From assembly GCA_000708835.1 (NCBI GenBank), contig DF236957.1:248001-312000 (forward strand): a DNA stretch of 64,000 bases, given 5' to 3'. This document shows, piece by piece, positions 947 to 38,800 of the stretch. A model generated the notes under the pieces. It ran no database searches, was not told the origin of the DNA, and worked only from the letters and a program-made list of their open reading frames with translations. The position numbers were made by a program, and so were the translations under genes. The first letter of the stretch is position 1, and each line of letters opens with the position of its first letter. This DNA comes from Klebsormidium nitens (taxonomy: Eukaryota > Plantae > Klebsormidiophyceae).

Positions 947-1033
947 AGCGGCTGTGAAGAAACAGAATTGTGCGCCCATGCTTCACCGACATGATGCACA
1001 TGTACCTTAAGAAATCGGGAGTCAGATGCCGCT
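947..1033 (+). ncRNA. Array element, candidate K-turn/C-D-like small RNA
   Basis: AGCGGC-TGT-GAAGA ... CAGA-T-GCCGCT. The 6-bp terminal stem AGCGGC/GCCGCT closes the motif. A GTGAGC donor-like motif lies at 924. Confidence 0.45.
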
Positions 1034-3448
1034 CAGTGGGGTTAACAGCCCGTCAAAGGCAACGCGCTCTGAAGTCCTCAATGATTCGTTGTCTGGGTCC
1101 GGAGGCTGAATGCGTTACAACCTGTGCAATTTTCGAGCTATTGCGACCAGCAAAAGTGCCGGCTGCTGCGACACTCGAAGACAACTGGTTCGGTCTCACG
1201 CGGGTTGAAGGCCCGAGGTGAGCTGAAGCTTATGTGATTACATTGGTGCAAGCAATCGAAACCGTGGATACGAGCACGGGTGTACTGAATTGACGTCGTT
1301 CTAAATCTCTGCTCCAGACGCCGTTCGACAAGCTGTGCGCTGAACGTGTCTAGCCCTTAAACAATGCTTTTTCTTGCACGTGCTTGTTGCCCTCGCAGAG
1401 ATCTACTGACGTTCTCTTTCCTGCGCGCTTTGTAAAGGATATTAGCTAAAGCGCGAGAAACTTGAGTCGGTCTCTTGTCCCAAAAAGCGAGGCACTTCAG
1501 ATCGACGGGCCGTGTGAGAACTAGGAGTGGTTGGTGGCTATGATGGGCTGGCCAAAAGCACGAGCTGCGACCCGCTCAAGCACAATCCTCACTTCAGACG
1601 CTCCCGATGCCGTTCAGTAGCTTGCGCACCTTCTTTGCCGCTGCCCTTCATACCTGATCAGTCGCGCTGCTGGCTATCTCCGAGAAATAGCGGGGTCGAG
1701 CTTGATTGCCAGCGTTTGGCAGTACTCATAGTAAAGTTGACACTCATACGGAACCGCCAAACCACCCCTGTCATTTGCCCCCGTTTCATGCGCGGAGGCG
1801 GAATGGAGGCATTGATTACGCCATTCGAGGAGTGGGCTCTGTTTAGGCTCACCCCTCCTTCTCAACCTGTCGGATGCCGCAGCATACAGGGGTTGTTTCG
1901 ATGAAATGTCATCAGCATACAGCTTCTACAAACTTCGCCTTTGGGTACTCAGCGATTACTTGGAACAACTTATCCGCTACGATGCAGCTTTGAGATCCAC
2001 TAATCCACTAGAACACGAGTTCACACGGCCACTCGAGCCTAGCGCCGTATAATGTATTTGACAACTCAAATCTAGATGTATCACGTCTCTCAATGTAGGC
2101 CACGGCCCGTCGGCACCGCGGCTTTGAAGAGGTAAGCACACAAAAGAATTTCTGCCTCGTGGCATGTCCAGCTTTCCTGGTGATCGGATGCCTTTCCTAG
2201 GAGCCAAATCATGCCTGTGTCGCATCCTGGTGTACGAAACATGTCGAAACGGTTGCCTGTTTGGAATCTTTTGCGCGGTTGTGCATCTGGGTCCCCGTCT
2301 GTTTGATAGATGATCTAGATCAAACAAATGAGTGGTCATGTTAGGGCCCAGTTGTATCGCCAGCCCTCCCACGCCTTTTCGTCCTACTGCTCAAGAAGGA
2401 TCTGGCACAACATGCGCGAGCGGCTTCTGCTTTGAGTTTTTAATCGAGCAAGCTTGCCTGAAGACGACTCGGACTTCTCGAGTCACTCCTCAAAAATCTT
2501 CGCATGCACCTAGCTCGAGGTTTCTTTACAGGACTTGAGCGCCCTCTCGGGTTTACAAAGCAACGGTATGCATGAAGCCATCCTGCATCATGACTAAAGC
2601 GCCGAAAAAGTGCCATAAAGCTCGCAGCTATCTCTCAGGTTGTAGCCAGAGTGACCCAGGCCGATTTTCGGGTGCGCGCGCACTCGCCTGCAAGATCCGA
2701 GGGCCGCCCACTTCGCACCGGGCCGAGCCTCACTAGATTACCTGACGCGCGGAAGGGGGAACAGCTCTTCTACTTTCATTTCCCAATGTTCCATGCCCCT
2801 GATCAATCACGTTGCTTGCGTTTAAAACTGTACCACGGGGCTTATCAAAGAATTTGACTTGATGCAAAGACGCCTCGGTAGCTTTACTCGAAGCACTAGG
2901 TCACGGGCCCTTACAAAAAAGACCATGCGCGGCTGATTGAGGGTAGGCGACTGGCGTTGTGACTTTGTACGTAGTTCTCGGCAAGTGTTACAGCAGCTAT
3001 GACGAGACGTGCCTAAAGTCTTGGGCGCGACGTTGCCTAAGCTCTTCTGGGCCGTCCGGATGTTGCGGATAAACCACGGCTGCAGATGGAGCTGACTTTT
3101 GTAGGTACACATATCCTTGCTTATGTCTGGAACACCAAGCGGAGGTTGACTCATTTCATTCAAAAGCATACAATCAATGAGTTACGACCTTGATCGCTTA
3201 AGACAAACCCTGGCAAGTGCATGGCTTACCTTCAAACGACTTCCGGAAGGATCGTCCCGGGTGCCATCGGCGCCGGAAGATGGAACAGCGTTTATACAAG
3301 CATACGATTTTGAAGCTGTACGATTCCTAAGGCCCTGCACTTTTGCGATTGCCCAGTGAAGTCGCTAGCATGATTTGTCAGAGTGCGGGCTGCTACGACT
3401 TAAACGAGGATTCGTCCTTTGCATCCACTTCGTGGGCGGATGGCGCCC

Positions 3449-3526
3449 TGCGGCAGTGAAGACGCGCTTCATGAAGACATGGGCACCGCTTTGCTCAATG
3501 CGCCTCTAGAAGTAACGGATGCCGCA
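3449..3526 (+). ncRNA. Array element, subfamily A (paralog at 4722-4798)
   Basis: TGCGGCA-GTGAAGA ... TGGGCA-ccgctt-TGCTCA ... CGGA-TGCCGCA, with a 7-bp terminal stem. Confidence 0.45.
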
Positions 3527-4127
3527 ACAACAGCACTGTGCACTCCGATTGCGCTGACATCAACTGCAAATGCTTTTAACGTGTAGAGACCTACTGATTA
3601 TCTGTCGAGCTCAATACTTTTAGCGCGAGCTTCTGGTTTCACGGTGTTTGGACTATACTTGTCCAGAATCATGTGACAATTTGAAGTGACGGATCGAGCC
3701 GGGGCGCCCGGCCCGATAACGGCCAGCCCACCTAATCCCCATGCTAGTTTACATCTCACCTAGGCGGTCCGCCCGCTCTGGACGCGGCTTTGAAGAGCTA
3801 CGATGTCACGAGCATTCCTGCGCAGGCAACTTTTTTGTAGCTGATGCCGTGCAGGCCTGAGGGGCCAGAAAAACAAGCCAGATAGAGATGCGGCTTGACG
3901 GCTACGAATGCATTGAAAGCATGGGCACCGATATGTACACTGGTCTCCTGTGGGACGTGCCTAACCTGGGCTTCTCAAGATCATGCATTCGTCTAATGTT
4001 CCATCGGCATCCGGTATTCCGTCGGAGTGTGTTGAGGCCGGGGAGACTTCTCCCGCGTTGGTCACGGGCTGAACAGAAGCGTTCTCATGTAGGGCGACTT
4101 TCAGACTCAAGGTGCGAGATTAAGGTG

Positions 4128-4199
4128 CTGGCTGTGATGATCAAGCGGGAAAGATTGTGAGCAACGTGCTCACCGTGTTTGATAGCGCCTCAGAAGCCC
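4128..4199 (+). ncRNA. Array element, subfamily C (paralog at 7732-7790)
   Basis: GGC-TGTGATGA is a perfect box C (RTGATGA). Internal hairpin GTGAGCA-acg-TGCTCAC, 3' end CAGA-AGCC. GTGCGA donor-like motif at 4112. Confidence 0.45.
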
Positions 4200-7100
4200 T
4201 GCCCACCATGACACCACTCGTACTACTAGTGGTTGGAATTCTTCTTGTTTATTCGCTTGTCTGGCACGCATCCGATTCGATGATTGGGCAAAAGTACTTG
4301 CAGATGGGGTTTTATTTCTTCTCTGGCTCTGATCGCATGGCGCGAATCTTATACAAGTTCGACGGCGACTTGGAGGAACAAAACAGCGGATGTACTGGCA
4401 TGACTAATCTAGTGACCAACGCCGGGCTGTGACGACTTTCGAAGCACGAGCATAGTCTTTGCTCAATAGGCCAAATCTTCTGGTTGCGGAGCTTCTGGTC
4501 CACTTTGCGATTGCGTACCGCATATGGTTGGAAGTTTGTGACATTCGGTCCCGCAAGAATCTGGCGCTTGAAGCTTTTTAAGGAGGCGCCTTCGGGTTGA
4601 AAGTAGTCGCAGCGTTTCAATCTCACTCATGGTGGGCTGTTACCCAACGTGGAAACCTCAATTTTCCCAAGACGACTGCGTCATGTGCTCCATGAATTCG
4701 TACGGTAAGCGGATGGCGCCGGCGGCAATGACGATGCGCTTCCAAACATGGGCGGCACCGCTTCGCTCAAAATTTCTGCGATCGGTTGCCGATGCCGCAA
4801 CATCATAGCGCTCTGCCCCCCGTCAGGCCCTGACGTCAGCCATATCTAGTGGCTACATTAATGACAAACGTTCTGCGAGCTTTGTGTCAAACATGCTTTC
4901 GAACAAGTTTGGCTGCGCAGCTCGTGAACGATGCTTGTGCCGGACACGAAGTGATACATGACAGCTTGAATCGGAGCACCGTTTCATGGTCAGCCCAAGC
5001 TTGACTACATTACACACCACAGCAAAGTCGGCCGCCCACCCGCCGCGCGGCTTTGAAGAGATACAAATGAACACGAGCATTACTAGCGATGCTCAAGCAG
5101 GGATTTTGTAGTCAGATCAGATGCCTTTTAGAGGCTGAATTGCTCCTGTCTTGATTCACGCTGTGCAGCAAGGTATAGTCTAAAAGTTCAATGTCAATTG
5201 CGCCTAGGACATGTGTTGCTTTCTGTCCTCGCCGAATTCGTCTTTCGCAATCGGTTCATTGAATTTCCCCCTGGTTGAGTGGTTCCCACAAGCCAGCCCA
5301 AGGCGCCTCCTTACACTGTTTGTAATTGGTCCACCGCTTGCTCGTGTTTCGCTTCGAGTAACACAAGCAAGCTTTGCTACTCGATCGTCATTTTGGACAT
5401 CGTGTCCTATCAGAGCCGACTTCCAGACGCTGGAACCAGTTCGCTTTGGACTGAGATCAGTCCCATTTGAAGGTCCGGTTGGCAACGCCTGCCTATTCAG
5501 AAGAAATCAGGCGAAAAAAGACTCGAAGGGTAGCAGGACGCTGACTAGAATGAGTGAAACTGGGCGTTTTGAAGCGAGAAGTTCTTGGCAGTCGCATCCG
5601 TTTGTTCGAGCAATTTGCTACTTATTTTGCTACGCAACATCAGCGAAGCAGAAGCGTCTGCGTTCCCACTACCTGTGTCATTAAGAGCCGCTAAATAACA
5701 AGCCACGGCTATGAAATCAGCGTTTGGACTTCGATGGGCTCAGTCGTCCAGCGGAGTGGTTTTTTGGAGCCGCTAAAATCCTTCTTCGAGTAGGTGTACT
5801 TTTGGATTGCCAAGTCGATACACAAACCCGCTGATTGTAGTAGTACTCGACCTTGTCAGTGGGTCTTTTTGGTTTGCCTTCGGTGATCAAATGTTCGAAA
5901 TACTGACTGGAGCTACTTGTCGACAAGTGAGGCCTCAAAACTCTTACGAAAAGACGATTGATCTGCGTGTTCGTCCCGTCATCTGTCTCAAGCAAGGCTG
6001 TTACATATATTCTCAATACCAACGGATCACGCAAGGGGTGCCAGCGGCAATGAAAGCCCACAAGCTGAATTTGAGCATTAGTCTTCGCTCATCCAAGAAC
6101 CAGTGGAGCCGCGCAACTCTCGCGCTTTCTGCGGTGTATCTTGTGTCTCTTCTGGTATGAGTCGTCTTGAGGATGCGGCCTGCCTGTTTCCACGTTTTGG
6201 TGGTACTCGATGAGGCCTTCACCTTTCGGGATTGATGTCGAGACTGAATGAGTTGAGTCCTGGTGCATCGATGCCGGAAACATCGTTTGGCCCAGGTCGA
6301 GGAACTGTGAAAGGGCGCTTTGCCTAAGACGCTTCAAAGGGGGGATGACGTACCCCTGTTCGCTAAAGGCAGTCTGATTAACATCTGGTTCGGCAATATG
6401 GAGACCAGTGCCAATGGGCGGGTTAAACTCAAATCTCTCACCTGCCGTCTTGACATCTAGTGGATCGATCCGCCAAGAGCTTTAAGAAACTAAAAATGAC
6501 ATGCGGCAACAGATGCTAAGCTAGCTACAAATGGATAAAACGGGCTGTGATTTCGCTACATACTGGGCAGTTCTCTGCTCAACAGAATCGTGTCAATACA
6601 TTTTACTGAAAAGGCCGTTAACTCTGTTTTGCAACCGGCTTGCCCTCGACTAGCTTGCCCATGTCTTTGATGTCAAAGTGCGCTGGAAGCGGCCCGGTTC
6701 CTGCCAGTGGCAGGAGTAGTACCTGCCATGGCAATAACAAAAAATACTTCTGTCTCGCCATGCTTGGCAGCGTCACGGTGCCCCCAGAACTCTCGGTAGA
6801 CGAGCTTCAACAGATCGTTCGTTTCAGTACGGGTTGAGAATACTTCTCGTCTGAAAGTGCGCCGATCAAGCGAGTCAGGCAGTGGGCACGGCAGATCGAT
6901 ATATTTTGACGTCTGCTTTCACAGCACTAGCGTTTGAAAATCTTCCTTGGAATCCAGCCCGCTTGTTACCATTTGTTGGATCGTGCTCTCTGGAGCTGCC
7001 TGTGGCGGTCGCCAGCTGACTTTCGAGCCGGCGTCTATAGGCGCTCAGGCCGGGCAATCGGCCTCGACCAGCTGTCCTTCGTGGGCGGTGCACTCTGGTG

Positions 7101-10069
7101 GTCATGACAAAGGCACTTGATAATGAGCTCCTACATTCGCCCAATAGGGTTCCGAGTGAGTCATGGACCGACGCTACTGGAAGAGCATCACGGACTGGCA
7201 AGATCGACACAACTAGATCCGGTTGGTAGTGAGTTTAACGTGATACGTATACACGAAGCTTCGAATCGACGTCTTGGAACTTGGCTGGCCATCTGAGACG
7301 AGTTTTTCCTGATTCGGCACGGCTAGTCGAGGAAGACGACCCTTTCCAGGGTCGGCCACGGAGCGCCTCTTGCCAGCCACGAAAAAGGGCCGAGAGGGAA
7401 GCGCTTTCAGACCTCCAATCAGATTTGAAGGTCTGATCACTCGTTCTTTTTTTCAACTGCATGTTCAAAGAAGCATGATGATAATGTGGCTGAACGGCTA
7501 TGGAGATATCGAAGGCACGGGCACAAGCATGTCCACTGGTCTTCGAGGCTGGACGTGCCAAAACTGAGCTGCTCGAGATCATGCACTCATCTAATGTTCC
7601 GACATAATCGGCCTCCGTTTATTTTCAACAAGGTGCTCGATTCTTGGGAGCCCTCTCCCAACCAGTGGTTTTACAGGCTGGGCAGAAGCCTTCTCACGGA
7701 GGACGTTCAGACGCAAGGTGCGAACTAGGGTGGCGGCTGTGATGCCAAACGGGAGATGATGAGCAGCGTGCTCGGGGGTAAGATGCCGCTGCAGAAGGCC
7801 TGCAGTGCCCACCGGTCGGAGCGGCTGGAACTCCTTTTGAAGGTCACCGGAGAAGCAACGTATTCCGCTTCTAGCTAGGTCCTGCGATTCTAGAAACTCT
7901 AGGATATATGTCTTTGGCATATCTCGTTGGCGGATATTGATTCCGCCATTACCTTGAACCTCATGAACAGAGTAGTAATGAGTGAAAGACCTTTGGCCAC
8001 GTAGACATGAAGGAAGCATTTGACAAATTCTTGCAGCTAGCTGCTGCTTCGAGTGAAGCTATGAAGATTTTTACGTTGTGGGCGGGTGAAGCTCACTTAT
8101 GATCTTAGACGCCGCCTTGTCTCATCGGGCACGCACGTGCATATGCATAAGCTGGTGACGTCATCACTGTGGCGCTTTTCGCCCATCTTTGCGAGTATCA
8201 CGGTCAATCACATGTGTCAAGCGAGTCCTGCCGGTCACTTCCCGCTGTGCTTCTGTCCAAGCAAGCTGTATAATCAGAAGCGCTGGTTCAAATGGTAGGT
8301 GGCTATGCGGTAAACCAACGGCGATACTCAGCTTTCAATCTGGCGAGCAATGTTACGATGTACTTATTGAAGATTGTCAAACCAGCCGCCTAGGCCAAGT
8401 AGCTGCGCGTCAGAACGAACTTTCGTATGGGCCTGTGAAGCTTGGAACGGCTGTCGAAAACCACCGCGAGTCACGCTGCCGGATTCAAGAGAGAGAATGA
8501 GATCACGCTTGCCGCTAGTAGTTCCGGGGCACGCGTACGACCCAACATATCAACAGATCAGAGGCTATGACAAGATATGTGGAAGCGACCATTATTGTGC
8601 TCAGGTCACCCACTCCTAGTCGTCCATTCCTGGATGCCGCAAATCAGAGACGTGCGCTACTCACGATTATACTTAGTCGGCCTCGGCCTTTGTGGTATGT
8701 TCTGGTGCTTAGCTCTCCTTGAATGTGATTCGGAAGCCCACAAAACTGCCTTTGCAACAGAAAAACGTTGCAATCAGGGAGCAGCGCCAATGCGTTATGG
8801 CGGGTATTACCCTTGAGTCAATGAATTCTTTGTAGACCGCAAATCAGAGACTGGGCGATCCATCGCTCGCGGATCATGTGAACGAGAAAGTCTGTTCTGG
8901 GCCCAATTTACCTGCTGCCTGAATTTCGAGTTGCTACATAATATACCGATCTCTTCAGGACCACTCGTTCAGCCCTTAATGCGAATCCAAGGTTGGCATG
9001 CAGAGGGACGTCTACCGATTCTTATCCAGCTTGTGCTTCGTCCGGCGCTGTGAACGTCGTTCTGGCCACTTTACTTGCTTCTGAGCTTGCCCTTTGTTTT
9101 TGTCAGATGCGAGTCCCTGAAACGGCCGTGCTCGAGCAGTCCTTCCATATTGCACTTCATCTGAACACCCACAGGCTGATGCTGCCGCTCGAGCGCTGGT
9201 GCGGCCATCACAAAATGAATTTACGAGCATCTTTCCGCTCAAAGCCGCTTCGTTGTACCCTACCTTTTATGCCGCTCTAGAAGCCCGGGCTGGCTACTCA
9301 AAAACAATGTCGAGATGTGATTGATCTATCATGGGTGCGAATGAAGTTCGAGTTCAGTATCCTTGGCCAGTTGATCGACTCCGTTCAATGCCTGGATCAC
9401 GTAACTTCATACTTCCGTGACGTTGTGGCCCTCTCGTGCTTGAACGTAAATTTCAGCTTGAATTCCATTTCTTGACAATACTATGTGGCATTCAGTCCGA
9501 GCTAGCGGTTTTGATGGCAAGAAACATGGGCGCTCTGCCCAGTCGATCAAGCTCGCTCCCGTCAAAAAAGTGATTGCCGCTTAGAAAGTCGCATGCCGAC
9601 TCGAAACGCTGTTAGTCTGTATCAGGGTCTTCAACCTCGAGTGACGTTCCGGCGGACACAAGCTCTGAGGTTTTTAGGTTACTGAGTATGGGTACATCGA
9701 TCCGCCAGAAAATTGCACTTCTGATAACACATTTTGACAGGTTTGGAGGGCTATTGGATGTGCACCGTGTGCGGATGAACCAGGGTGGGTCCCGTGCCGT
9801 TGCTGATGGAATCTGAGTTGGTCCCGTTCCTCGCTTTTCCTGAGGATCCTGAGAATGCTCCTTCGTATTGTAGGAAGCGCTTTTTGAGCCTCGCATCGGC
9901 TGTAAACCGTTATACTTCTTAGAACGTCCATAAGAAGTTCTTGCTTTCGATCCGAACAATCGCAATGATCGTACCCCCTTCGATCCGGCCGTCTACTTCT
10001 TCTTCCCCTGAAACGGGCAACAGAATAAAAATTGTATATATGGGCAGCATGACGTGTGCATATGACCTT

Positions 10070-10083: not shown

Positions 10084-11940
10084 GGTCAAAGAAGAAGCAT
10101 TTCAGACACGGCAAAGACGAGAGAAGATTCTAATTTATCAGTTTTGAAGACGAAATTATACGCCGCCGTACTCTTCAACATGGGCGGACCGCCCTGCCTA
10201 GCTAGCTAGGCGGCAAGGATGGGCTTAACATTTGGGGACGTGGCTCATTCAGCTAACCCATCACATTCAGAGCCGCCCAATATCTTACACACAGACACTG
10301 GCACGCAATCATTCAACGCTGTGACTCGTGGATTCGAACCTTTTATTTGTCTTGATCGGCTTCCCCAGCTCTCTGTTTGGAGATTTTGACAGCCCAGGCG
10401 GTGTCTGGATCATAAACGCTTGTTAACGGGTGCTGCAAAACCAGGGTGCCTTTCGTCTCCACTTTCCCCGTGCCCTGCTGCTTGATTCAGATGAAGCGCT
10501 GTAAAATGTATATATTGTGCTCCCCACACTTTTCGATGAAAGGGTGTCTTGTCCTCAACTTTGGCATATCTACCGTCCAAACGTCGTGCTTCAGTCCTCT
10601 TCGCCTTTTCCACGTGGTTATACGAACCGGCCTCGAGTGTCTATCGTGCAAGGCCGTTCATCTCTCTCGTAACGCTTTGACAAAAGCCGAACTTGAAGGG
10701 GCAGGTATTAGCTCACGCAGTTACGAAATGGCTGTGATGTAACAAAACCTGAGCAGCATCCTGCTTACGTTAACTTGGTGGTCTCTAGATGCCGGTTCAC
10801 AGAAACTCTTTTCGAAACCTAAGCTAGCTTCCAAAACGCCACTTCGATGATTCTCAGCTGCTCAACTCCGTCAACTCGGTGTCCTTATTTTCGAGCCAGC
10901 TTTTTGCTTGCCTTTCGTTGATCCATCCAATATTCGGGAGTGAAAAAGCGGGAGTGAAACATTCGGTCCCGCGTTTGCCCAAAATGGTTTCGATGCACAC
11001 AGGAACAAATCTAAGATTGTGGCTGCTTATAACCAGGCCGATTACCCAGACCTGAGTCTTAGGTTATCCAACCCAATGTTTTGGCTGGGTACCGCCCAAA
11101 TCTGGTTACTGGACATATGACCAGTTTCTAGCCAGCCCATAAAACAGCCCAACGCCATTCATAATGAAGGGTCAGAAATCTTTCGTGATCCTTGGAAGTA
11201 ACTGGTGCTCGAAGCCCAACCGGCTCGGAAATGCTTGCGCGGCCAGGATGACAATTGCGCGTGTCTGGACCGTTTTCTCAGATCGGAGGTGGTTGCGCAG
11301 ACGCTGCGGTTCGAGAAAACTTGACCACCGAGGAACAGTTAGTACTGTGATCGGACGGATGCATGTCAGGAATCTCGACCTACTTCGTCCACTGATATCG
11401 CTTGCGCGCTAATCTGCTGTATGAGCTGTAGCACGCGGCTATAATAAAGCTCTCGGCAAGTAAGAATATGGATCAGGTCGAATCCATTTGCCACTTTTTC
11501 GACTCGGCCTGTGACATTACTCTTTGCAGAAGGGCGTACGATGCTCCTTGCTTATTTAGAAATGTTCTTGTTGCCCCCTCGGAGCACGTACCAATGAGGA
11601 CCAATCAAAGCCACTTACAAATGATGGGCGAACCTCAATGCGAACAGCGCTGGCGGAACGCGCAATCTCGGCTGACGGACAAGCGGCCACTGACTGTCAC
11701 CATTTTGTCAGCGTCGAGAATGACGGCTTCGATTCGACGTTCTTCGGATCCGAGATCGAGAGCCGGGGACCAAACTTACGATTCTTACGATTCTGGTCCT
11801 AGTTGCTAAGAGCTAACGCCCCAACAGACTTTTTGAGCCTGTGGACTCTTTGGCTGAATATCACTAGAACGGCTGTGACAGCGTCGCGGCCATTCATCGA
11901 GATGTGCGTTCTGTCACGTTCTGTCTGCTCAAGCTCCGTT

Positions 11941-13475: not shown

Positions 13476-13546
13476 AGCGGCGATGATGAGCAAGATAGAC
13501 GAGTTTTCTTCTGCTCAACTCCGGGGGCTTGTCACTTGGATGCCGC
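13476..13546 (+). ncRNA. Array element with canonical box C
   Basis: AGCGGC-GATGATGA-GCA ... TGCTCA ... TGGA-T-GCCGC. Confidence 0.45.
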
Positions 13547-15042
13547 AAAGTGGCTGCGTGTCTTCTTCTGCGTGTCTTCTTCTTCTGGACTTCCAGGCTT
13601 TCCTGAGTTGCACCTTGCACAAGTTTTGCAAGTTATGTATGCAGGGGCCCTGCAGTAGTGTCAAATCGTAAGCTCGTTTTTTCTCAGCTTTTCTGTGACC
13701 TTTGCGAAGCAATCGAATACTGTTACCAAACAGAGAAGACTGGCCCAAGGTGATTGCGGCTTGCTTTACAGTGCGCAATAAATCACGATCTCACGGCTAG
13801 ACTTCGAACGGCCATCACTGATACCAGAACATAGGGCAGTGTTGTGCTCAACCGCATCTCAAGAAGGCTTCAAGATGCCGCAAATCCGAAGTGCCTTACG
13901 CACAGCTTCGTGAGATCGGTCGTTTGAATCGAAAATTGCGACTAGCTCTGAATACTCAGTCCTGTTTGCCTTTCCTCCTGCCCATTCCTCTCCTGCCCAT
14001 GTTGCCCCTTCTGCGCCTGTCTACTCTTGGTCGCTCTTACTCTTACTCCTCATTCACTTGATGTTAGGACGTCGGAACAGCATGTGGGCGATAAGTCGAA
14101 TGCAGATGAGCAAGGGTTCTCAAGCTGCAGAGCCCGCGCGGTAACTTCGTGGAAGCGCTGTACTGCATGCCATCCTGAACTTGCCAAGAAGGTGTGACCG
14201 ATGTGCTGCTCGTTTCCACTTGGTTCCCGCTTGGTCGGCATTCTCTCGACTCTCGTTGCTCGGTCCAACTTCAGCAAAACCTGTACGACGGAATATCTCT
14301 CTCAATTGCTTTGGCGACGGTGGGTTTCCAGCATATTGGGCCCTATCTGCCATCCCAGTACTGCCGCAGCTAGAAGCCCTCGGTGCCTATGTAAGGGAAG
14401 CATGCGAACTACTTTCGAGATCTAACTTGCATTCAATGATCTATTTTTTCACCAGTTGACGTCATCCAAGTTACCCTCCACGATAGTGAGCCTGCCTCTG
14501 CCAAATCCACGTCGGTAGACCGGCATAAGTCACACAGCGAGCAGCCGTTCTTTGATAGTCTCGTTCCGCCTCAATCGCGTATAAGGACCACAGCGGCAGC
14601 CCCCTGTCGGCAAGCTGGTGGTTCCGCCGGTGCGGAGAAGGTAGCGGCCGTGACAAATTAAGCACGAGCATCATCTTCAAGCTCAAGCTCGAGGTTTTTG
14701 AAGCCGCTCACAAAGGAGTGGCAGACTTGAAGCTTCCCGGCCAGACGTCCACTTACGTTTTTCAAGCATCATCGCCCAAGTGTACAGATTAGCAGTTCAC
14801 GTCATAAACCGGGAAATGAGCAAAAGAACGAGTGAACGAGACGTGTGAAACCTTCTCAGAGTCGCACGCTCCTTCTGAGAGTACTGAAAGGGGTGCGTGC
14901 GGTTTGGCGGCAATGATGTGAGGATCGTTCAGCAGCAGTCTTGATGTCACCAGACAGAATCCCGTCGGCCACACGATCTAGAGCCGCTCGAGTGTGTGTG
15001 GATCACCATAGATTTATGCTTTGTTTCGCCCTATGTTCTCAG

Positions 15043-20400: not shown

Positions 20401-20528
20401 CTTGAGATTTGCTCAGTGTGAGGGCCTCGGTCCTTTGAAGCTGCACATGGTGTGGCCCTCGTCGCGCAAACGGTACTCTGATGGCACTTCGCACGTCGCG
20501 GACTATCACATGGACCTTCTCTGCGAAG

Positions 20529-21600: not shown

Positions 21601-21750
21601 GAGGGCCGCGTTGAGCGCAGCTGGCGGCCGCGGACGCCAGTAGTACTCGCGGACCGCGCGCGCTGCCGCTGACCTTGCAGTAAACGTCCCGGCCCCGCGG
21701 GCCGCGCGCGCTGCAACGAGTTAAGGCGGCCGCCAGACAACGGCGGCTTG
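21601..21750. repeat. GC-rich multi-hairpin block (copy 2)
   Basis: Follows E element 21502-21581 and aligns at its start with the 11941 block. Confidence 0.55.
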
Positions 21751-26179: not shown

Positions 26180-26350
26180 CGGGTAGCCGCGGTTAGCGCC
26201 CGCGCGCGCAGCGCGCGCTGGCTAAGTGTCACGCATTGCATGACGGCAGGTTACGGCCGACTAGAGTCTGCGTCGGGCCACCATAGGTTTGGCGCGGCCG
26301 CGCGGCTGGCGGCGGCATGAGACGCGGCCGCTTGGGGCGCGCCCGCGCAG
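26180..26350. repeat. GC-rich multi-hairpin block (copy 3)
   Basis: Follows E element 26015-26109 and is rich in CGCG/GGCC. Confidence 0.5.
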
Positions 26351-27937: not shown

Positions 27938-28015
27938 GGCGGCTATGAAGAGCTTTCTTGACGCGAGCAAGCTCTTGCTCAGGATGGGGTTTTCCACTGT
28001 GACTCAGACGCTGCT
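27938..28015 (+). ncRNA. Array element, subfamily G (paralogs 29751, 31382, 34891; related 20370, 25672)
   Basis: GGCGGC-TATGAAGAGC ... GAGCAAG-ct-CTTGCTC ... CAGA-C-GCTGCT. Confidence 0.45.
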
Positions 28016-31000
28016 CAATGTTGGTTGTGTACTCGTCCCGCAAATAGCGCTTTTGCGGGCAGTTCTTCGTGGGCATTCTCGTGGACATTACGGAAGAAAG
28101 CCGTTGTGCAACTGTAAGGTCAAGCCGCCAAAGTGTGAATGGGGGCTCAAATTTGTTCGGGAGTAACAAAACTCTTGGAGGGAAGTCCTGCTCAACATCT
28201 TGGACGCGTCTCTAGGAGCCAAAGCAACGGACACGCCACCCGTTAGCCGAATCCCAAGCTCCGTCTGATCCGTCACTCGGTGCCAAGCTCATTGAAGTGA
28301 AAGTCAAACTTCCTGCCCAAAAGCTTAGAAACCAGTTCGAGAAGAAAAGTGAAGATGACAATCTTATGTTTGCCGTGCGTGTCTTTATCATTCTAGTATC
28401 TTCAAGCTTAGATACGCCGCGAGCTGGAACCGCCACAAAATTGGTAATCGCACAGAAAGGCTTGGCTGCTAACCAGGTTCGAGAACCAAACTTCAGTCTG
28501 GCACTTTGACCAATAACCGCGTTATAGCCATGTTTAAAACCTGGTAACTGCTCGAGTCTGGTCCTTGGACAGTCACGGTTAACCAGATTCGAAACAGCCC
28601 GTAACCGAATGTGGTTAACCGCCAAAAACTCCTGTGATATCGAGAGTTTATGATGAGCATGGTGTTTGAGCACGTCGTTCAGATGGGCACCGCTCATATA
28701 TCTTTTCTCGAATAAACACATGGTTATAAATACAAGAGTTCCATGCTTTCTGTTCTGCTGCTTAGTGGCGGCTATGAAGACTCTGAATGTTGGGCGAATG
28801 AACAAGGCATCTTGAAAAGCGCCCATCTGGTCCATGCAGAGACTTGACGCCTTTTGACTGGGCTTCCCAGGATTGAACGCTAAATTCGTTGCTTACCAAT
28901 CTAGAATCTGCAAGACCTACGCGCCTGAAAGAATGTGAAAAGAGACTGCTCCCGGCGGTAGTCTTTTTCAAAAGCCTTTCCATGATGTTCTTCGTTTTCA
29001 CCGACAGACTAATGAAACGCTACTCGGCGGCTATGATGCGACTCATCTTATCGCTTCCGACCCCATGCCACGTGACCTTGTAGGATTAGACTCTCCAACT
29101 CATTTTCATTTTATTCCTTAAAGTCCGTATAGCCCGTAGCTACTTGGAAGGAGCTACTTGGAAGGAGTTTCCGTACTAAGAGCCTTCATCAAGCCAACAT
29201 GCTGTCGTCGACGAACTCTGGATAATTACTCCATTGGCCAGGTAATAATCAGTAGTCTGCCTTGATTCTCTCCAGACCATCCAGTTGCAACCATCTGCTA
29301 CTTGTCCGAATCTTCCTCTGATTCCTCGTCCCAGAGGTCCTCGAGAGTTGAGCACACGCCAGATTGGAAAATACGGCATGAAAATATTCAGCCAAACTGC
29401 CCAAAGACAAAGACGGCTGAAAGTCTGCCAAGGAGCTGTTGTTGGAATCCACCCCTTCAACAGGTGCGAGTCTCCTGGCTTTAAGGTCAGGTAGACAAGT
29501 ACGTATAGCCGCCGGCTGGGATGAGTCTAATTGTCCGCGGCGCTAGTTCGATTGAAAGCCGGGCTCCCGAGAGTATTCAGAAGCCGTTTTTCGAACGTTT
29601 CCGAGTATAAGTGATATTTGCCGAGCAGCACACCGGATTTCTGATCGGTCGTTCGTCGGTGTGAATTCCGCGTACTGGAGCACTTCCGCAAGCAGAAAGT
29701 CGTAGGAAATGCGTGTTTATCTCCGTTGCTCGGCCTAGATTGCGCTCGCAAGCGGCTGTGAAGAGCTCTCCTACATGAGCAGCCCCTTGCTCAGCGAACT
29801 CTTCAGGATTCTATGACGCTGCACGCTGATCAACATTGTGTAGGACTGGTACTGACGCAATTGAGGCTTTGATGGCAATCAGCACTTCGCGGACTCTCAC
29901 ATGGATGTTACCGAAGGAAGCGGTTGAGGTGCAAGTAATAGGCCCCAGAAGTGTAAGCACACCGCGTCAGAGCCCATTCTCCAGAAACGAAACGTCTTTC
30001 TTTCTTCTCTACTAGCCAGCTTACTCTGCGAGTGCTTAATCGTGGCGTAGTTTTCCAGGAGGCGCTCAGCAGAGATTCCCGCTGCGAATCCCAAAATAAC
30101 ATTGTGTATATCTTACTAGTGTTGCGTCCAGAAAGGTACGTACCGATGTTGCCGAGCCGCTTACGGATGACAATCTTGATGAATCAACGGAGGGTATGAT
30201 TTGCTCGCCGGAAACTTTAGGAACCAGGTCCATGAAGACAAGCGGAGATGGTACTGGATTCAAGCATCTGATGTCTGTCGAATTGTCTTCACTTTCTCAG
30301 TGCCTTGGATTCTAGAGCTCTCCGAAAGGCTCGCAATTCTCGTAGTCGAGCGGTTAGGATGAGCCGGGTGTCTTGAAACGGCAGTCTCTCTGATAGGCAC
30401 TGCTTACAAGCCTTATCTCAGATGAGCACGTGGCTCACGAATAAGCCGAATCCCCATGCTTTCCCATTTGCTGCTTGTTGCCGGCTATGGCGGTTGTGGA
30501 TGTTGGGCCAGATATACAAAAGTGCCCAGCTTCGCCCCACGAAAACGGACGCCTTCTGACTGGGTTAATCTCAGTAATGAACGTCAAAGCTCTTGTTTAC
30601 TTTTAATCTCACGAGACTTATGCGTCTAAAGAGCTCTAAATGAAAGCGCTTTCGGCGGCCCAGTGAGAAGCCTTCACAAGGTTTCCTTTTGTTCAATGAC
30701 GCGATGCTGCGTGAGTTGGCGCCATGATGCATCCTTGGCAAGATTCTCGCTTCCGATTCCGACCAATATTGCTTGCAAAGCAGATCCTTCGCTTCAAAAT
30801 TTTTCAATTTGTCAAATTCAGGCATCCGGTTGTTTCGAATCAGCGCCCGAGCCTCTGAAGCTCTAGGCAAACCTGTTGCCCTCGCAATAATTCAGCGTTA
30901 AGCCCGGCTGCCCACTTCATTGCAAGCAGTCGGCCGTACTGTTCTGCAGAATTTTTTGCGCCGGGTACACATATCCACATTCGGCTCTGAGTTCCGAGGC

Positions 31001-32189
31001 GAGCACATGTTGATTGTAACTACGCCATTGCGAACGGTATCAAAACGTGATCAAGCTGCCCGACGACGAATTGGCTGAAGTCCGGAAGCTTTGTTTATTG
31101 AAAGCAGTTTTCTCCTAAAACGCTTATATATAATGAGGGCCAAACATCGACTGACTTGGGCGACCCTCGGGACACTGAGAACTGAGGGACGAGTTGGTCC
31201 AAAAGAAGGTCATCGGAAACGGTTTCCTGAGAATAACAAGTGGTAGCTGTAGGCAGTCTCCGAATATTCGATGGTCCTCGTCAGCGGCTTTAGTGCCTAA
31301 TATCTGAGCACTTACGAACGCCGACTAAAGCCAGATACGCCGCTTTTATCTTTACCGTCGCCGGGCTTACATAGGACTTACCAGCGGCTATGAAAAGCTC
31401 CGCTTTCAAATACGAGCATTCGTTGGCTCAATACATGGTGTCTCGGAGCGATGAAGCTGCTGATCCACGCCTTGTAGGACTCGTTATGTTTTCGGACTTT
31501 CCTTGCACTTCGTGCGTCGCAGACCCTCACATGGACGTTCATTTCCGAAAGAAGCCAAAAATTGGCAGTTGTACGTTTGAGCCGACACTGGCACGCGTTC
31601 CACACAAATGCTCTGGCTCAAATGTCATGTCTTTCTCCTTATACCTTCTAAGAATCCCGCTACTCTGCGACTGCTTATCCTCGGCTTTTCTTTCCAAATC
31701 GTCAGGCATTGACCGCGGTTTAAGATTCTCGCAGCTTTTTGTAGCACCCTCGTGGCGTTCTTCGATTTCGCCAGCGCAGCTGGTTTCCGAGAAAAGCTTC
31801 GTGCTCTTATCATGGTCAAGAACTGATTAGATTGTTACTTACCGTGACGGCGAGCGCTTGTGACCCAACAGATCCTTGGTCCTGTCAGTAACAATTTACG
31901 GCCTACACGACCCCCTGCTATCCCAACTATTCGAAGCTGCTTATTCTCGTACATCACTCGATGGATTCATAGGGGGTTCCCCTGCTTCAACACCCATGAT
32001 TTCTTGTCTTTCAGGATATAGGCAATGACGCGCGGGATTTTGGGCATGAGCAGACACACGAAACGCTCATTTTCATCTCGTAGATGACCGCACGTACCAA
32101 GAAGGAGCCGCTTACGAACGACAATCTCGCAAAACTGAGGGTGTCCGCACTGAGCGCATACGGGCGTCGACCAGCGTATCGTGTTGATC

Positions 32190-32300
32190 GCCAACAGACC
32201 TGCCGCCGGCCGCGCGGCCCGCCGCCCGCTTGGGGAGTGTGCGCGGCCGCGACTCGTGCGGCGCAGGAGACTGGCCTAGCGGGCCGCCAGCTGGGTGCCT
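32190..32300. repeat. GC-rich multi-hairpin block (copy 4)
   Basis: Follows E element 32019-32112. Confidence 0.5.
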
Positions 32301-33912
32301 TTGACTTCTATATAGAAGACACGGTGTGCATTCGGGCTGACGACAGGTTATAATTCTGTCGTCGAAGATTCCATCGACTACGTGTAAGCGCTCACAAAAC
32401 AAGTTCCGGCCGTTACCGTCCTTTAGGTCGGTCCTCACGTTCTGACTATATTGCCGCTTGCCGCGGTGCCATGACTCCTGACTTGAAGAGTCAATTGTCC
32501 GCTTAATCGTCAAATCATTCTTCACGAAGACGTTAAGACTAGTACTAGAAAATACTTTGTCAGCCCCCGAGCTAATTTTCCCCCAGTTTCAAGCCCTGCA
32601 GTCAAATCGTAGCTCAGTCGCGAACGCACATGACCCGAGCGAGGGCCAGCGAAGAGGTCCCGCTTTTCGACCGTTGCGACCTTTGAGCCGATTGCAGCGT
32701 CTTTCCGGGCTGCTGAAGAGTCCGCCGGCGGAAGTGCTTTTACGGAGCGGGAATTACAGCGCCCGGCGCGCGCGTAGGAAGCACGGACGCGCGCTCGGAT
32801 TGCCAGTGCGTTATGACCAAAACCGCCTGTGCGACTCTGAGGAACATGGCGCTTCGGGAGATCAAAAGTAAAAGTCTTCCACTGATATTCGTACGAACAT
32901 AAAGGTCTGCTTTTCTGGAAAAAATCCAACTGCAGGCACGGGGCGAAGAGGGAAAGTAGCGGCCGTGACGAAAAATAGTCCTGACGAGCAACCGTCTCCT
33001 CATGGAAGACGCCCCCTCCTTTTTCAACCAATGCCATATGCCCTTTCTATTGCCTCTGTGCCGCTAATTGTTTGCCGTTCACGTTTAAGCGTACAAAAAT
33101 CGAAGGACTGTACGAAGAAACGCGCAAAAGTCGAGACTACAATAGAGCTTGGTCAATGTCTAGTGCAGAAATCTGGCGTTCGTTTGACACACTGTTTCTG
33201 GGCTGACCGGCCTAGTTCTCTAACCTTTCTGGCTGTTGGAAGCTTCATCTTTGATAGGACTCGATTTTCAGCGCAGTACGTGCCGAATCTTCACTTCCCG
33301 GCTCGTTCGGGTACCCTTCACTCAGATGCACGCTCCCCTCTGCCTTGCAAAATAAAACTGAGGAGTCGAAAAACACGGAGCGGTGTGGGAAGCCCTGTAA
33401 TTGAATGTTCACATTCAACTTGAGCAGCAATATAGTTAAGTGACGTCTCGCTCGATAGCCCTTGTCTGCCCTCTCCACCATATTTGCTCTAAACAACAAG
33501 TCGAGGCCAGCCGACTACGTTCGAAGAGACCATTACGATAGAAAAGGGGCTTACGAAAGTAGAGTCCAGCATCTGACGTCCGCCCAACGTGTCATAATAT
33601 CTGACCTCGGATCTTATCCTTGTTCCAAGCTGGACCGACTCATAAAAATACTAATGTTTGGGGGGATGGCTTTATACTGGAAGAAAACCAGCGTGCTCTT
33701 GCTATCACCCTTTATTTGCGTACGTAATAGCATCTTCAAAGAGCCTTGCTCTTTCGATAACGTACATATTCTTGGCCGGCAAGTAGCTCAGGTCTCATCT
33801 GGAGAAGCGTCACGGAACGTACGCCGCGAGACCCGCCGTGAGGTTGATTCTTACACAACCATAACATGCTTCACGGAAAGGCTCTCGCCTTCTTTCTCGT
33901 CTCCTTGTCAGT

Positions 33913-34001
33913 GGCGGCCTTGAAGAATGTCGCTTTTGGGCACACTCCCAGGGTATTATTGCCCAGATGTGTTTGTTTATTGTCTGGAATCAGATGCCGC
34001 T
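33913..34001 (+). ncRNA. Array element, subfamily F (paralogs 22239, 24648, 27118)
   Basis: GGCGGC-CTTGAAGA ... TGGGCA-loop-TGCCCA (compensatory G-C variant of the hairpin) ... CAGA-T-GCCGCT. Confidence 0.45.
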
Positions 34002-34732: not shown

Positions 34733-35522
34733 CTCCATGTATACTCCCGACTGCCGGGCAGCCTCTTGGATCCTCGTACTGGTCGTCGGTGCAGTTCAAT
34801 ACTCGTATAAGTCCTCCCGGATGCGGGAGGGCCTGTCTGCCGCGCGCGCTTGTAGACATTGCCATTCCTAGGCTTGGAATACACTCGCTTAGCGGCTGTC
34901 AGGAGCTTTTGACACATGAGCAAGCTTTTGCTTACTGAATTTGGGTTCTCTTGGCCCCATGACGCTGCTCAACATTGCCCAGTACTAGCCGAGCGAACTT
35001 GACTTCGAGGTCGCGCATTTGCGCACGAAGTGACGGATGGAAGCCAATCTTTAGAACGGTATGTTCATGCCGCCAGAGTGCATGGCCCGTCAAAATAGTG
35101 CAGTCTCAGAAGAGGGGATTTTCTCCGCTTGTTCGCGCCACCTTTTATGTCACCATCGCAACTCTTTCAGGTTTCTAACCAGCGCAGCTGGGCAGCGCAG
35201 CTGGTTGCAAATAAGCGGATGAGGCTAATGTTTGTACTTGCCATATTTGCAAACGTCTTTCTTGAAGGGAATCGCTCCTAAACATTCATGTTTTCATTGC
35301 CCCCTTCGATTCCAATATGCTTTCGACGACTCCCGATGAATCCGATCACTAGCAGAAGAGGCTTGCGGTATCGATGCCTTCGATTCCCAGAACCACTCAT
35401 CAACACATGTACAGGGCTTGAGATGATATTCCCAGAGATGCGTGAGCCGATTTCAGAAGTCACCAATCATGACACATTTCAGATTGACAGACACGATATG
35501 TCTTCGTCTTTCAAATTAAGAT

Positions 35523-35611
35523 AGCGGCGATGACGCAAGATGACTCTGGCATGAGCAAAAATGTTTGACGCGCACAAGGGCAGAACGAACGTACCAACGA
35601 AAAGAGCCGCT
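35523..35611 (+). ncRNA. Array element, subfamily E (paralogs 18990, 21502, 26015, 32019)
   Basis: AGCGGC-GATGACG ... GGCATGAGC ... AAGA-GCCGCT, followed by a GC-rich block. Confidence 0.4.
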
Positions 35612-35634
35612 TACAGATCGCAATTCGGCAAAAG

Positions 35635-35860
35635 GCGGGCCGCCGTCATGAGCGCACGCGCCCGCGGCCGCGTACGGTGCCGCAACCACCTCCGTACCGC
35701 GGGCCCGCGGCCGAGAGTTCGAGGCCGCGCCGCGTACGCTGCCGGTAATGATGAGTGGGCCAAACCCGCGCGCCGGCCCGCGGCCGGGGATTCGCGACAG
35801 CGAGGAAGGCGACGGCTGCGGTTAAAAGACACGTGCGGAGCCGGCTCAGCGAGCCGCATG
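35635..35860. repeat. GC-rich multi-hairpin block (copy 5)
   Basis: Follows E element 35523-35611. Local hairpins CCGCGTACGG/CCGTACCGCGG and CGCGGCC/GGCCGCG. Confidence 0.55.
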
Positions 35861-38800
35861 CGTGCCTTTGACTCCTGTAGAACGAAGATTGCAGTTGGGC
35901 TGCCTGCAGGGGATCAAAGAGTTGCAGAAGAGACTCTGAGGTTTGGGTGAGCGTTTGCAGAACGGACGACCGACACGTTGGCCCTTTTCACTACTAGTCC
36001 GGATTGAGAACCGCCGCTTGCTCGCTAGTGCGACGCAGTCGCTTCCAACTTCTCAGGATTCGATGACTCTATTTCGTCGTTCAACGTCTATTCAACGGGC
36101 GTACGTCGAAACCCAGTTCTTTAGCTGCGGGTCAGTGGCAAGCCCTCTACCGGCCAAATTGTACGTGCTCGCGTTTATTGCGGAACGCGAGGTCTACAGT
36201 GTATCTTCCCCCGTTGAATATGTGTTCGTCGGCAACATTCTTTTCGAGCTAAGAGCAGTATGCAAAGTTTACTGCGCTGCTAAAGGTTCCGCCTTGCGAA
36301 GAGAGTCTTCCGAGCTGAATCGGCATGGTAGCATCGTAGGGGGCCGGCAGGCGCGCGCGCCCAATCTAGAAAGCACGGGCGTCCAATGGACTGCTGGGGT
36401 GACGGGATCAAAGGTCGCACGGCTCCGTCACCCTTTGAAACAATGGGAACTGATCTTCACTAGTCGTCATAGTATATATAGTACATCCCCACTTTAACTA
36501 AGTTTGATCTCTTGGTCTAGCTTTGACCGTCTGTTTTCGGAATAAGCGACGCGCCTCCAGGGGCGAAGACTCTGGCGGCTGTGACGAAGAACAGTACTGA
36601 GGAGTAAATCGCGTCTCCTCACCGCTGTACAGTTATCCTTTCAGTGCCGAAGCTGTCTGCGCAGCTGTGATCACTGTGGCTGCGCCGCGCGCTGACTTTT
36701 CTCCGGTCAGACTAGGTGTGCAAACAGTGATGGACTGAACGAAGATTGTTTCTGCTGATCAGCAGATACAGAGTGTATGGGGATCATGCGGCCGATGCAC
36801 ATAATTGCTTTCTGGCCGCGTAGTTTCATGATTCTGTTATGGCCGTCTTTGAGCCCCAACGATCTCTGCAGACGCAAGCTCATCGTTCGAGGGGGTTCTT
36901 GCGTCAGCGCGCAGCACGATGCACTAACCCTCACTTGACTCCAAGTAGGAAGTGGTCAACAGGACGTTTCTTGGTTTGGCGATTAGCGTCTCTTTAAAGG
37001 CGGCTCAGACGCAACGCTTTCGTTTTCTTCGATTGCCTGTGATGGCATTGGGTCCTGAGCAGGCCGAAAGTCGACCCACAAAAAGCAAGAAGTCTCTCCG
37101 GAAATCTTGCTTGGTATTGTTGCTTAGTTCTGTGCTCGCCATCGGTCTTTTGCCGTCGCAAGCAGATTTCCTTCGACAATGCTCAATCGAAAAATGCACC
37201 TCTGACCGCGACCAGAGGTGCAATTCCTGCAAACTGGAAAGTCAACCGAAGTAATCGACCGTCAGGATGGTGTCTTGGATTTATGCAGCGAAGCAAGACA
37301 TTCCAAATCCATCCTGTCAAGTACCTAATCACTCCCCTGGAGCTGCTGTCTAAAGATTTCTCAACGTCGTACAATCCGCGTGTCTTGCAGGTTTCAGCAA
37401 TATGAAGCCTTGTGCAAAATCAAAGGACGAGAACACTTTGCAGCCTGCATACAAGCACAGCTTACGCAAGGCAAGAGAACTCAATCAGGAAGTACCCTCC
37501 TGAAGCGGATCAGGGGCTAACACGGAGTGAGTTTTGTTTTGTGTGATAGTTATGCTCGGATCTAGGTATCAGATGGGTCGAGCAAGCGGCCTCTCAACAG
37601 TTACTGTAGGGTAGCTACAATAGGCGTCGAAAGAATAAAGGAGATTATCTGCACACGGATCAAGCGTACGATTGGTATCCGAGCGACTCAAACTGTTTAG
37701 TATATGCTTTTAAATCCTCAGTCTTATCGGCCATCTTGTCGCAAGTCGCTGTCCGCCTTTGTTGTACATCTCGTTCGATCAATTGGGTACAGGCCGTGTT
37801 CAGACACCATCAAGTGCATGATCTGACATGCAGAAGGCTGTTGCACCCGTCCACATCACTGTGAAATTAACGTACGGACCATTTGAATGCGCGATCGCTC
37901 CGAAGCAGTCGTTGCAATAAGTGCGTATAAGCGCTGTTAGTAATGAGATGAATCCTCGTGCTAGCGGTAGTCCGCTTCGCCTTTCAAGGTGATCACTAAG
38001 ACGTTAGCTAGACAACACATGCCGCTGCATGATTCATGCTTGTATGACTACTTCGCCTTATGGCAATCATTGTTTCTGCCGGTCCACCACATGCAGGGTG
38101 TGCTTATATAGGCATCTGGCCCATGCACTGGGATGTCGCAGTCGAGTTGAAAGAATGAACACATGAAAGGCATCTCGTGGGTGCTGAAGTATACATTTGA
38201 AAACTTGCCACAGCGGGCACGCCAGGATAGTATTGTAACTCACCATAAGCTCGCAGTGCGCCGCCGGTCGGACGGCGGCGATCGTCCAACAGCGTGTGTG
38301 TATACAGGAATATTGGGCAACAACCGGAGAGACGCGCACTCATTCCAGTCATGCATATTGATGTACAGTAGCGTGTTCAGTTCCGGAGCTAGGTCCTCAA
38401 GTTGGACTCTGTTATGTTGCAGTTTCGAGCATATGCATAAGCTAGCGCTACTAGGCTCACTGAGGCGGCATGCATTGTGTCAAACTCCATGTAAGAATCA
38501 TACTATAACGCATCGTGGGAGGGTTATTGCGTCCAGCCTGCATGTGACAATTAGTATATATGGCGCATGCTCAATAAAACACGCAATATGAACGTTGATT
38601 CATGACTTCCAAGTCGAGTCCGCGCTTGTATGTACTGTACATGTGCGCAAAGGGTTGGATCATCGGATCTTCTCTTTGTACGATGTCATCGTTGCATATA
38701 CACAGGAATGATCGGAAGCTGTGCCTCAATGATTTTCAACGAATGTGCCTCGATCATGCCAATGGCTTCGTCACTGGTTAGCGGCCGCCCTAAGCTTGAT

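Follow-up and report, generated by a model that had tools for sequence, protein, structure and literature searches.

Clusters of box C/D small nucleolar RNA (snoRNA) genes are the closest described systems to the locus reported here. In plants, polycistronic clusters of box C/D snoRNA genes were reportedly described by Leader et al. in 1997, and such clusters are short, with few genes separated by short spacers. In mammals, SNORD copies are distributed singly over the introns of a spliced host transcript, and members of a family are nearly identical, even in their arms. To our knowledge, orphan C/D snoRNAs in large tandem arrays have so far been found mainly at imprinted loci of mammals, and what these arrays do is a matter of debate. 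Polycistronic plant snoRNA precursors are processed by endo- and exonucleolytic trimming, and Arabidopsis clusters also hold unexpressed snoRNA-like members that are possible pseudogenes (Kim et al. 2010, PMC2875012). The same article mentions SNORD115/116 (SNURF-SNRPN locus) and SNORD113/114 as mammalian tandem orphan C/D arrays. Here, we describe a stretch of 64,000 nt of the alga Klebsormidium nitens (DF236957.1:248001-312000, assembly GCA_000708835.1, a nuclear contig; hereafter the window), in which covariance model searches identified an array of ~50 co-oriented box C/D-like units at 485-36683 on the + strand, with unique spacers between them.

Similar to the plant polycistronic clusters, the K. 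nitens array is composed of co-oriented C/D-type units that lack promoters of their own and carry a terminal stem and C/D motif at their ends. Growth by duplication, degenerate members and release from a precursor (expected here) are further common traits. Most members of the plant clusters have ribosomal RNA (rRNA) or small nuclear RNA (snRNA) targets and canonical RUGAUGA and CUGA boxes, whereas the K. nitens array extends to ~50 units over 36 kb with ~0.7 kb spacers; its boxes have a free middle position, its stem and hairpin are constant, and no targets were found. With the mammalian SNORD arrays it shares tens of co-oriented orphan C/D units within a long non-coding region and the lack of an rRNA target; expression of the mammalian arrays is condition-restricted, and the same behavior in K. 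nitens would explain its silence in standard libraries. Unlike the SNORD arrays, the arms of the K. nitens units are fully diverged and no host gene or splicing was seen, and the two kinds of array are certainly of independent origin. Intronic snoRNA gene clusters of Chlamydomonas, said to have been described by Chen et al. in 2008 (cited in PMC8226300), likewise belong to a green-lineage alga and are multi-copy clusters from local duplication, but they are set apart as reportedly small, expressed and mostly rRNA-targeting.

A parallel to the tigRNAs of TIGR-Tas systems had been drawn in an initial annotation of the window, which was made from the letters alone. These prokaryotic and phage systems, in which the tigRNAs adjoin a gene for a Nop-domain Tas protein, share with the K. 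nitens array only the abstract layout of box, variable segment, internal element, variable segment and box. This layout stands, but no Nop-domain Tas gene was present among the window open reading frames (ORFs) scanned with Pfam, and the host of this nuclear contig is a eukaryote. Overall, the K. nitens array is set apart from the described systems by its size, long unique spacers, relaxed box middles, constant stem and hairpin, and diverged, target-less arms. The titles and abstract openings of literature mentioning Klebsormidium and snoRNA contained no description of such arrays.

Extent and orientation of the array

The initial annotation had proposed a single-orientation array of 55-60 modules and a model-based search for them; such a search was carried out on the window and on 224 kb of unrelated eukaryotic control DNA, and strong enrichment was observed in the array only. 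A first covariance model (R1), built from 19 aligned, hand-picked clear units with two helices and run with filters off, produced 39 matches at E<0.3 in the window, every one of them (39/39) on the + strand and within 485-36656. A second-round model (R2), built from 38 matches, produced 52 matches at E<=1, with 51 on the + strand within 485-36683 (39 of these at E<0.01) and the sole - strand match being weak and located at 52-120. R2 had zero matches in the 27 kb to the right of the array (36.7-64 kb), and the control DNA gave a single model match with an E of 4. Motif counts followed the same strand, as GCGGC-NNN-GA-N-G occurred 27 times on the + strand versus 5 on the - strand, GA-N-GCCGC 23 versus 5 times, and strict full units 8 versus 0 times. 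The module family is strand- and region-specific, far above chance, and the single-orientation array is real.

Several dimensions of the array were revised. The first supported unit lies at 485 instead of 947, so that the array starts at or before 485, and its left end may be situated beyond the window edge. The supportable number of units is ~45-55, lower than first proposed. Modules had been given as 55-125 nt long and recurring every ~0.1-1.5 kb; a few units do reach ~125 nt, but the typical length is 57-93 nt (mean 75 nt), and the gaps measure 122-3062 nt (median ~700 nt).

No genes were identified within the 36 kb array region. The array region contains 16 ORFs with a length of 130 aa or more; Pfam analysis of 12 of them gave no significant match, and Pfam analysis of 16 ORFs across the window recovered the glutaredoxin domain of a neighboring gene only. 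Public annotation lists no gene in the 10 kb adjoining that glutaredoxin gene (~29.3-39.3 kb), i.e., in the right 7 kb of the array. The claimed absence of a credible coding sequence consequently holds among the ORFs scanned with Pfam and in the annotated right part. A tRNA scan identified none. The spacers had been called unalignable, and self-blastn of the array was indeed nearly blank, with only a handful of residual spacer similarities.

Unit anatomy and selection at the RNA level

The consensus unit reads, from 5' to 3', GCGGC; Y-R-U; GA-N-GA; arm 1 (9-18 nt); (Y)GAGCA-loop-UGCUC(A), with a loop of 3-30 nt; arm 2 (~6-33 nt); C-N-GA-(N); and GCCGC. Its constant parts are a 5-bp terminal stem (GCGGC/GCCGC), a C/D box pair ((R)UGA-N-GA with C-N-GA) and a hairpin (GAGCA/UGCUC, 5-6 bp). 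Across 38 units the terminal stem is 93.5% paired, with one pair showing G-C, G-U and A-U types. Position frequencies in the C box are 0.91 for U, 0.84 for G and 1.00 for A, followed by a free position and then 0.69 for G and 0.75 for A, while the GA of the D box is conserved at 0.88-0.91 and its position 2 is free. In 91% of units the third nucleotide (L3) of the 3-nt 5' bulge is a U. The GA dinucleotides are 84-100% conserved and positioned such that tandem sheared G.A pairs could form. The 4b-4n pair (C-box G6 with D-box N1) is formed in 23 of 28 units (G-C 16, G-U 4, A-U 3), and the 3b.3n position is free. Judging from these sequence features, the unit ends resemble a box C/D-type kink-turn and may form its stem, 3-nt bulge, tandem sheared G.A pairs and subsequent 4b-4n pair. 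Internal C'/D' boxes were not found in the units; the center is a plain Watson-Crick hairpin (GAGCA-loop-UGCUC) with no D'...C' K-loop.

Other structural assignments were tried and rejected. A collection of many unrelated kink-turn RNAs was dismissed because, among 5-bp stems of any sequence combined with GA...GA, only the GCGGC family was enriched, which points to one family. The aligned units also lack the extended helix II and AAR loop of a selenocysteine insertion sequence (SECIS) element, and the GAAA core or cleavage-site layout of a hammerhead.

Conservation coincides with the unit boundaries. Precisely at the first G of GCGGC, information content climbs from ~0.1 to 1.3-2.1 bits, and directly after the last C of GCCGC it returns to background, with flat flanks on both sides. 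Within the units, ~28 motif positions are 70-100% conserved in ~40 copies, whereas neighboring positions and spacers are at background. Standard pairs make up 92.8% of pair cells in the 38 units, compared to 23-41% when the partner is slid by 1-3 columns. In the covariation check that the initial annotation had suggested, the observed number of double-change cells was reached in 4 of 500 shuffles and the covariation score in only 1, and the ten modeled pairs contain 300 Watson-Crick, 36 G.U and 7 A.C cells (binomial p ~9e-6), although both the covariation and the G.U statistics derive from paralogues that share ancestry and from alignments fitted by the model. The excess of G.U over A.C indicates that the + strand is the RNA strand. 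Selection is confined to the stem, boxes and hairpin and acts at the RNA level, and the interiors vary freely. This agrees with what had been proposed from the sequence alone, namely a C box-variable-stem-variable-D box layout with kink-turn features, whose conserved and covarying positions are as expected, and selection on modules while the spacers decay, as conservation stops at the unit ends with arms and spacers at background. The individual units are listed in Table 1.

Table 1 Units of the K. nitens array, with positions in the window and scores of covariance models R1 and R2
Feature	Position	Strand	Support
unit	485..550	+	R2 32.8 bits, E 3e-5
unit	948..1032	+	R2 38.8 bits; strict motif pair
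unit	1534..1613	+	R2 34.9 bits
unit	1806..1880	+	R2 32.8 bits
unit, hairpin and 3' stem degenerate	2118..2194	+	R2 23.1 bits
unit	2993..3066	+	R2 31.3 bits
unit	3450..3525	+	R2 46.9 bits
unit	3784..3850	+	R2 45.6 bits
unit, C box canonical GUGAUGA	4127..4202	+	R2 34.9 bits
unit	4424..4495	+	R2 32.3 bits
unit	4722..4798	+	R2 45.9 bits
unit, outside R1 training set	5047..5127	+	R2 42.3 bits
weak unit	5705..5773	+	R2 16.2 bits, E 0.19
unit	6044..6112	+	R2 30.5 bits
weak unit	7494..7552	+	R2 18.1 bits, E 0.07
unit	7733..7789	+	R2 36.7 bits
unit	8055..8115	+	R2 24.8 bits
unit	8561..8640	+	R2 40.0 bits
unit, outside R1 training set	9201..9275	+	R2 41.1 bits
unit	10210..10276	+	R2 29.0 bits
unit	10728..10795	+	R2 34.1 bits
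unit	11239..11307	+	R2 24.1 bits
unit, C box canonical AUGAUGA	13477..13546	+	R2 43.2 bits
unit	13808..13881	+	R2 31.4 bits
unit	14644..14707	+	R2 34.2 bits
weak unit, good ends, no central hairpin	14907..14987	+	R2 13.6 bits, E 0.76; 5' motif
unit	17769..17840	+	R2 27.9 bits
unit	18213..18282	+	R2 36.0 bits
long variant unit, 124 nt	18405..18528	+	strict 5' and 3' motif pair; R1 13.7 bits
unit, subfamily with GAGCCGCUUAC 3' end	18991..19082	+	R2 25.7 bits; alignment A5
unit, GCAGC/GCUGC stem (compensatory change)	20370..20444	+	R2 36.6 bits
variant unit, GAGCCGCUUAC subfamily	21503..21609	+	R1 11.4 bits; alignment A5
unit	22240..22323	+	R2 27.4 bits
weak unit, paralogue of 10728 and 17769	23255..23325	+	R2 16.3 bits
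unit	23848..23917	+	R2 35.8 bits
unit	24649..24732	+	R2 35.3 bits
unit	25673..25739	+	R2 33.1 bits
unit, GAGCCGCUUAC subfamily	26016..26108	+	R2 27.3 bits; alignment A5
unit, top score	27939..28014	+	R2 52.7 bits
unit	28768..28853	+	R2 22.5 bits
unit	29752..29822	+	R2 50.9 bits
unit	31384..31460	+	R2 43.2 bits
weak unit, GAGCCGCUUAC subfamily	32019..32111	+	R2 13.2 bits; alignment A5
weak unit	32959..33064	+	R2 16.9 bits
unit, GGGCA/UGCCC hairpin (compensatory change)	33914..34000	+	R2 40.8 bits
unit, outside R1 training set	34892..34968	+	R2 40.6 bits
variant unit, GAGCCGCUUAC subfamily	35524..35610	+	R1 10.9 bits; alignment A5
last unit of array	36575..36656	+	R2 22.6 bits

Proposed function and competing readings

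The locus is probably a tandem array of ~50 orphan, non-canonical box C/D-like small RNA genes (~57-125 nt) that are cut from a long precursor of the + strand. No promoter, terminator or tail motifs are common to the unit flanks (flat information profile), and since the units lack promoters and terminators of their own, one or a few long + strand precursors would be transcribed across the array. Snu13/L7Ae-type proteins would then assemble on the kink-turns at the terminal motifs, and exonucleases would trim to the protected terminal stems, releasing ~50 different small ribonucleoproteins (RNPs); this trimming step is modeled on the processing known from polycistronic snoRNA clusters of plants (PMC2875012). 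The mature RNAs would not guide conserved rRNA methylations. Instead, their arms may address other RNAs, or the RNP itself may be the product; targets other than rRNA, or a role unrelated to guiding, would be compatible with the free arms and with the lack of the U.U pair. A more specific version, which we hold to be quite improbable, is that the units form a distinct class of Snu13-type kink-turn RNPs and not degenerate snoRNAs. In such RNPs the 3b.3n position would be free in place of the U.U pair on which canonical snoRNP assembly relies, the hairpin would recruit a different partner protein, and the arms would provide a large, fast-diversifying antisense repertoire against non-ribosomal RNAs such as those of mRNAs, transposons or viruses under restricted conditions.

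Besides the shared ancestry of the aligned units mentioned above, several observations weigh against an array of small RNA genes. As the initial annotation had recognized, the boxes are mostly non-canonical, with an exact RUGAUGA in 4 and an exact CUGA in 2 of the 38 units. The U.U pair of box C/D stem II (3b.3n) occurs in only 1 of 28 units, and in ~80% of units the D-box GA is separated from the stem by one additional nucleotide, usually a pyrimidine, that faces L1. Folding energy is only modestly below that of shuffles (z ~-0.8) and equal on both strands, which is as much as can be expected from a stem and a hairpin that are both short. Rfam 15 returned nothing on the whole window at the gathering score and matched no unit on 1-37500 at E<=10, leaving no known snoRNA family on any unit in this previously suggested check.

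Complementarity to rRNA was assessed with 12 complete ribosomal DNA (rDNA) units cut from 120 metagenome loci with an 18S 3' end, a set that does not include the rRNA, snRNAs or mRNAs of K. nitens itself. The longest antisense matches of 38 units to these rDNA units had the same distribution as sense, reversed, and reverse-complement-reversed controls, and complementarity anchored at the D box or at D'-like positions equaled the reversed-rRNA control, both of which also count against small guide RNAs. Similarly, k-mers shared by 6 or more of the 12 rDNA units were matched at the level of spacer controls, and the only conserved 11-mer match falls on the D box and stem. With rRNA complementarity at control level, the units are orphan with respect to conserved rRNA. 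Complementarity of units to the rest of the window revealed nothing beyond the shared motifs. A further point on the same side is that the arms are not conserved between paralogues, and this drift gives no sign of a maintained target.

The last adverse observation is transcriptional silence. For all listed K. nitens RNA runs, 0.00 of the sampled words from 900-6800 and 3440-3860 were recovered, and four RNA sequencing (RNA-seq) runs, one from each of four studies and each comprising 33-45 Mb of contigs, contained nothing on 27920-33900 (5981 letters), although contigs show presence, not absence, and such libraries would probably miss non-polyadenylated 60-120-nt RNAs or short-lived precursors. 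This silence argues against a well-expressed spliced host gene. The guide-RNA library suggested in the initial annotation is not supported, with arms at control level against rRNA and not kept between paralogous blocks, and with no stable RNA or precursor in the RNA-seq contigs.

Some of these observations would also suit units that bind proteins in cis, within a single long non-coding RNA or a giant intron that escaped annotation. The product would then be the RNP array itself instead of individual guide RNAs, and it could serve as a sponge or scaffold for a kink-turn-binding protein or, through end-caps resembling those of snoRNA-related long non-coding RNAs (sno-lncRNAs), stabilize the spacers. 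Only motifs of a protein-binding type are conserved while the arms drift as fast as the spacers, the constant stem and hairpin sequences would be unusual for independent guide RNAs, the rRNA tests found no targets, and the units have no promoters of their own. However, no long transcript was seen in the RNA-seq contigs, the public annotation lacks genes in the right 7 kb of the array, and the sharp boundaries at the terminal stems fit excised small RNAs equally well. We regard such a long RNA as unlikely.

The array could alternatively be an evolutionary relic or a selfishly expanding repeat, its units being pseudogenes or copies amplified neutrally, without expression. None of the RNA data sets examined shows a signal in the region, many units are degenerate (E 0.01-1), and the unexpressed, possibly pseudogenic snoRNA-like members of Arabidopsis clusters (PMC2875012) provide a precedent. 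Neutral decay, however, cannot explain conservation that is restricted to ~28 positions at 70-100% in ~40 copies beside neighbors at background level. The changes that are tolerated are compatible with RNA (G.U over A.C, compensatory pairs), and hallmarks of mobile elements are missing, making this explanation distinctly unlikely in our judgment.

An ordinary, unannotated cluster of guide snoRNAs for 2'-O-methylation of rRNA or snRNA would fit the overall C/D layout, and arms of 9-18 and ~6-33 nt could accommodate guide elements. In the unit starting at 14644, 10 nt of arm 1 (14654-14663) are complementary to the 18S segment GCUUAAUUUG, present in 12/12 rDNA units. This arm lies between the C box and an ACGA, a potential D' box, and is the only arm matching a universally conserved site, but a match of this length is within chance expectation. 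Both free and anchored complementarity to the 12 rDNA units, a set without the rRNA and snRNAs of K. nitens and hence without lineage-specific sites, equaled the controls, the sole conserved match of at least 11 nt spans D box and stem and not an arm, canonical boxes are rare, and there is no Rfam match. An ordinary guide cluster is thus very improbable. Finally, DNA-level elements (protein-binding palindromes, recombination or replication signals) instead of RNA genes are hardly credible. The motifs do include short inverted repeats and transcripts were not found in RNA-seq contigs, but the units occupy a single strand, tolerate G.U five times more often than A.C, and conserve unpaired GA and U positions that would be meaningless in duplex DNA.

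Array growth, genomic surroundings and significance

Relationships between units suggest how the array was assembled. The closest relative of a unit is often found at an index offset of +-4, +-6 or +-8, and three paralogous two-unit blocks (10.7, 17.7 and 23.2 kb) retain order and spacing. Only motif positions still align between these blocks, with arms as diverged as spacers, which indicates that multi-unit blocks were duplicated long ago and that purifying selection has since acted on the motifs alone. No hallmarks of mobile elements were detected on the units, as target-site duplications and A-rich tails were lacking and flank repeats equaled the cross-pair control, arguing that the copies were not retroposed or transposed. 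The transposon termini that could have undone the initial annotation were not found on the units. An origin as miniature inverted-repeat transposable elements (MITEs), short interspersed nuclear elements (SINEs) or snoRNA retroposons was rejected on the same grounds and on account of the single strand, single locus and unalignable interiors. CpG depletion, which would have hinted at methylated heterochromatin, was likewise not seen (observed/expected ~1).

Additional repeats are scattered through the array region. GC-rich blocks built on the palindrome CGCGGCCGCG occur five times (12032-12093, 21624-21735, 26293-26333, 32207-32252 and 35663-35786), and four of the five lie 100-300 nt downstream of the GAGCCGCUUAC-subfamily units at 21503, 26016, 32019 and 35524. 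From the sequence, GAGCCGCUUAC unit and GC block together appear to make up a repeated module of higher order. Upstream of one subfamily lies a conserved GCCGGCUCA piece, which showed no array-wide enrichment. A 235-bp spacer segment is duplicated with 97% identity (15043-15277 and 17073-17307) and is far younger than the rest of the array; it may stem from a local duplication of recent date or represent a small mobile fragment. A gap of 2.8 kb without units contains a 32-nt tandem repeat (16361-16619), accompanied by further, diverged copies.

To the right, the nearest gene is a glutaredoxin-family gene (P0002; 39347-42685, - strand) with a GRXCR-type C-terminus, whose 3' end faces the array at a distance of 2.7 kb. 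Opposite this gene, in a stretch of 63% GC, lies a 706-aa ORF (39957-42077, + strand) with no Pfam match, which we read as a probable artefact of GC-rich composition. The glutaredoxin gene is followed by the annotated gene for RNA polymerase III subunit RPC5 (PF04801; ~44846 to beyond 52052, + strand), with tandem repeats nearby (33 nt x 3.5 at 52149-52263; 30 nt x 2 at 52411-52469). An orthologue of the glutaredoxin gene with 79% identity was found in a relative, on Logan contig L121 (SRR23617307, 9360 nt), and by this sequence a related Klebsormidium-like genome is present in public reads. The contig holds no units, and ends 1.9 kb past the gene; with the same layout as in the window, an array would lie only beyond this point.

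If the units are indeed small RNA genes, the locus would represent an independent origin of an orphan C/D array in a streptophyte alga close to land-plant ancestry, and Rfam-based annotation would be missing a whole family of K. nitens small RNAs. Should the units be unexpressed, the case would still illustrate the birth and decay of snoRNA-like arrays. As an array of small RNA genes with selection confined to the protein-binding core, it would in principle offer an experimentally tractable system for the function of orphan kink-turn RNAs.

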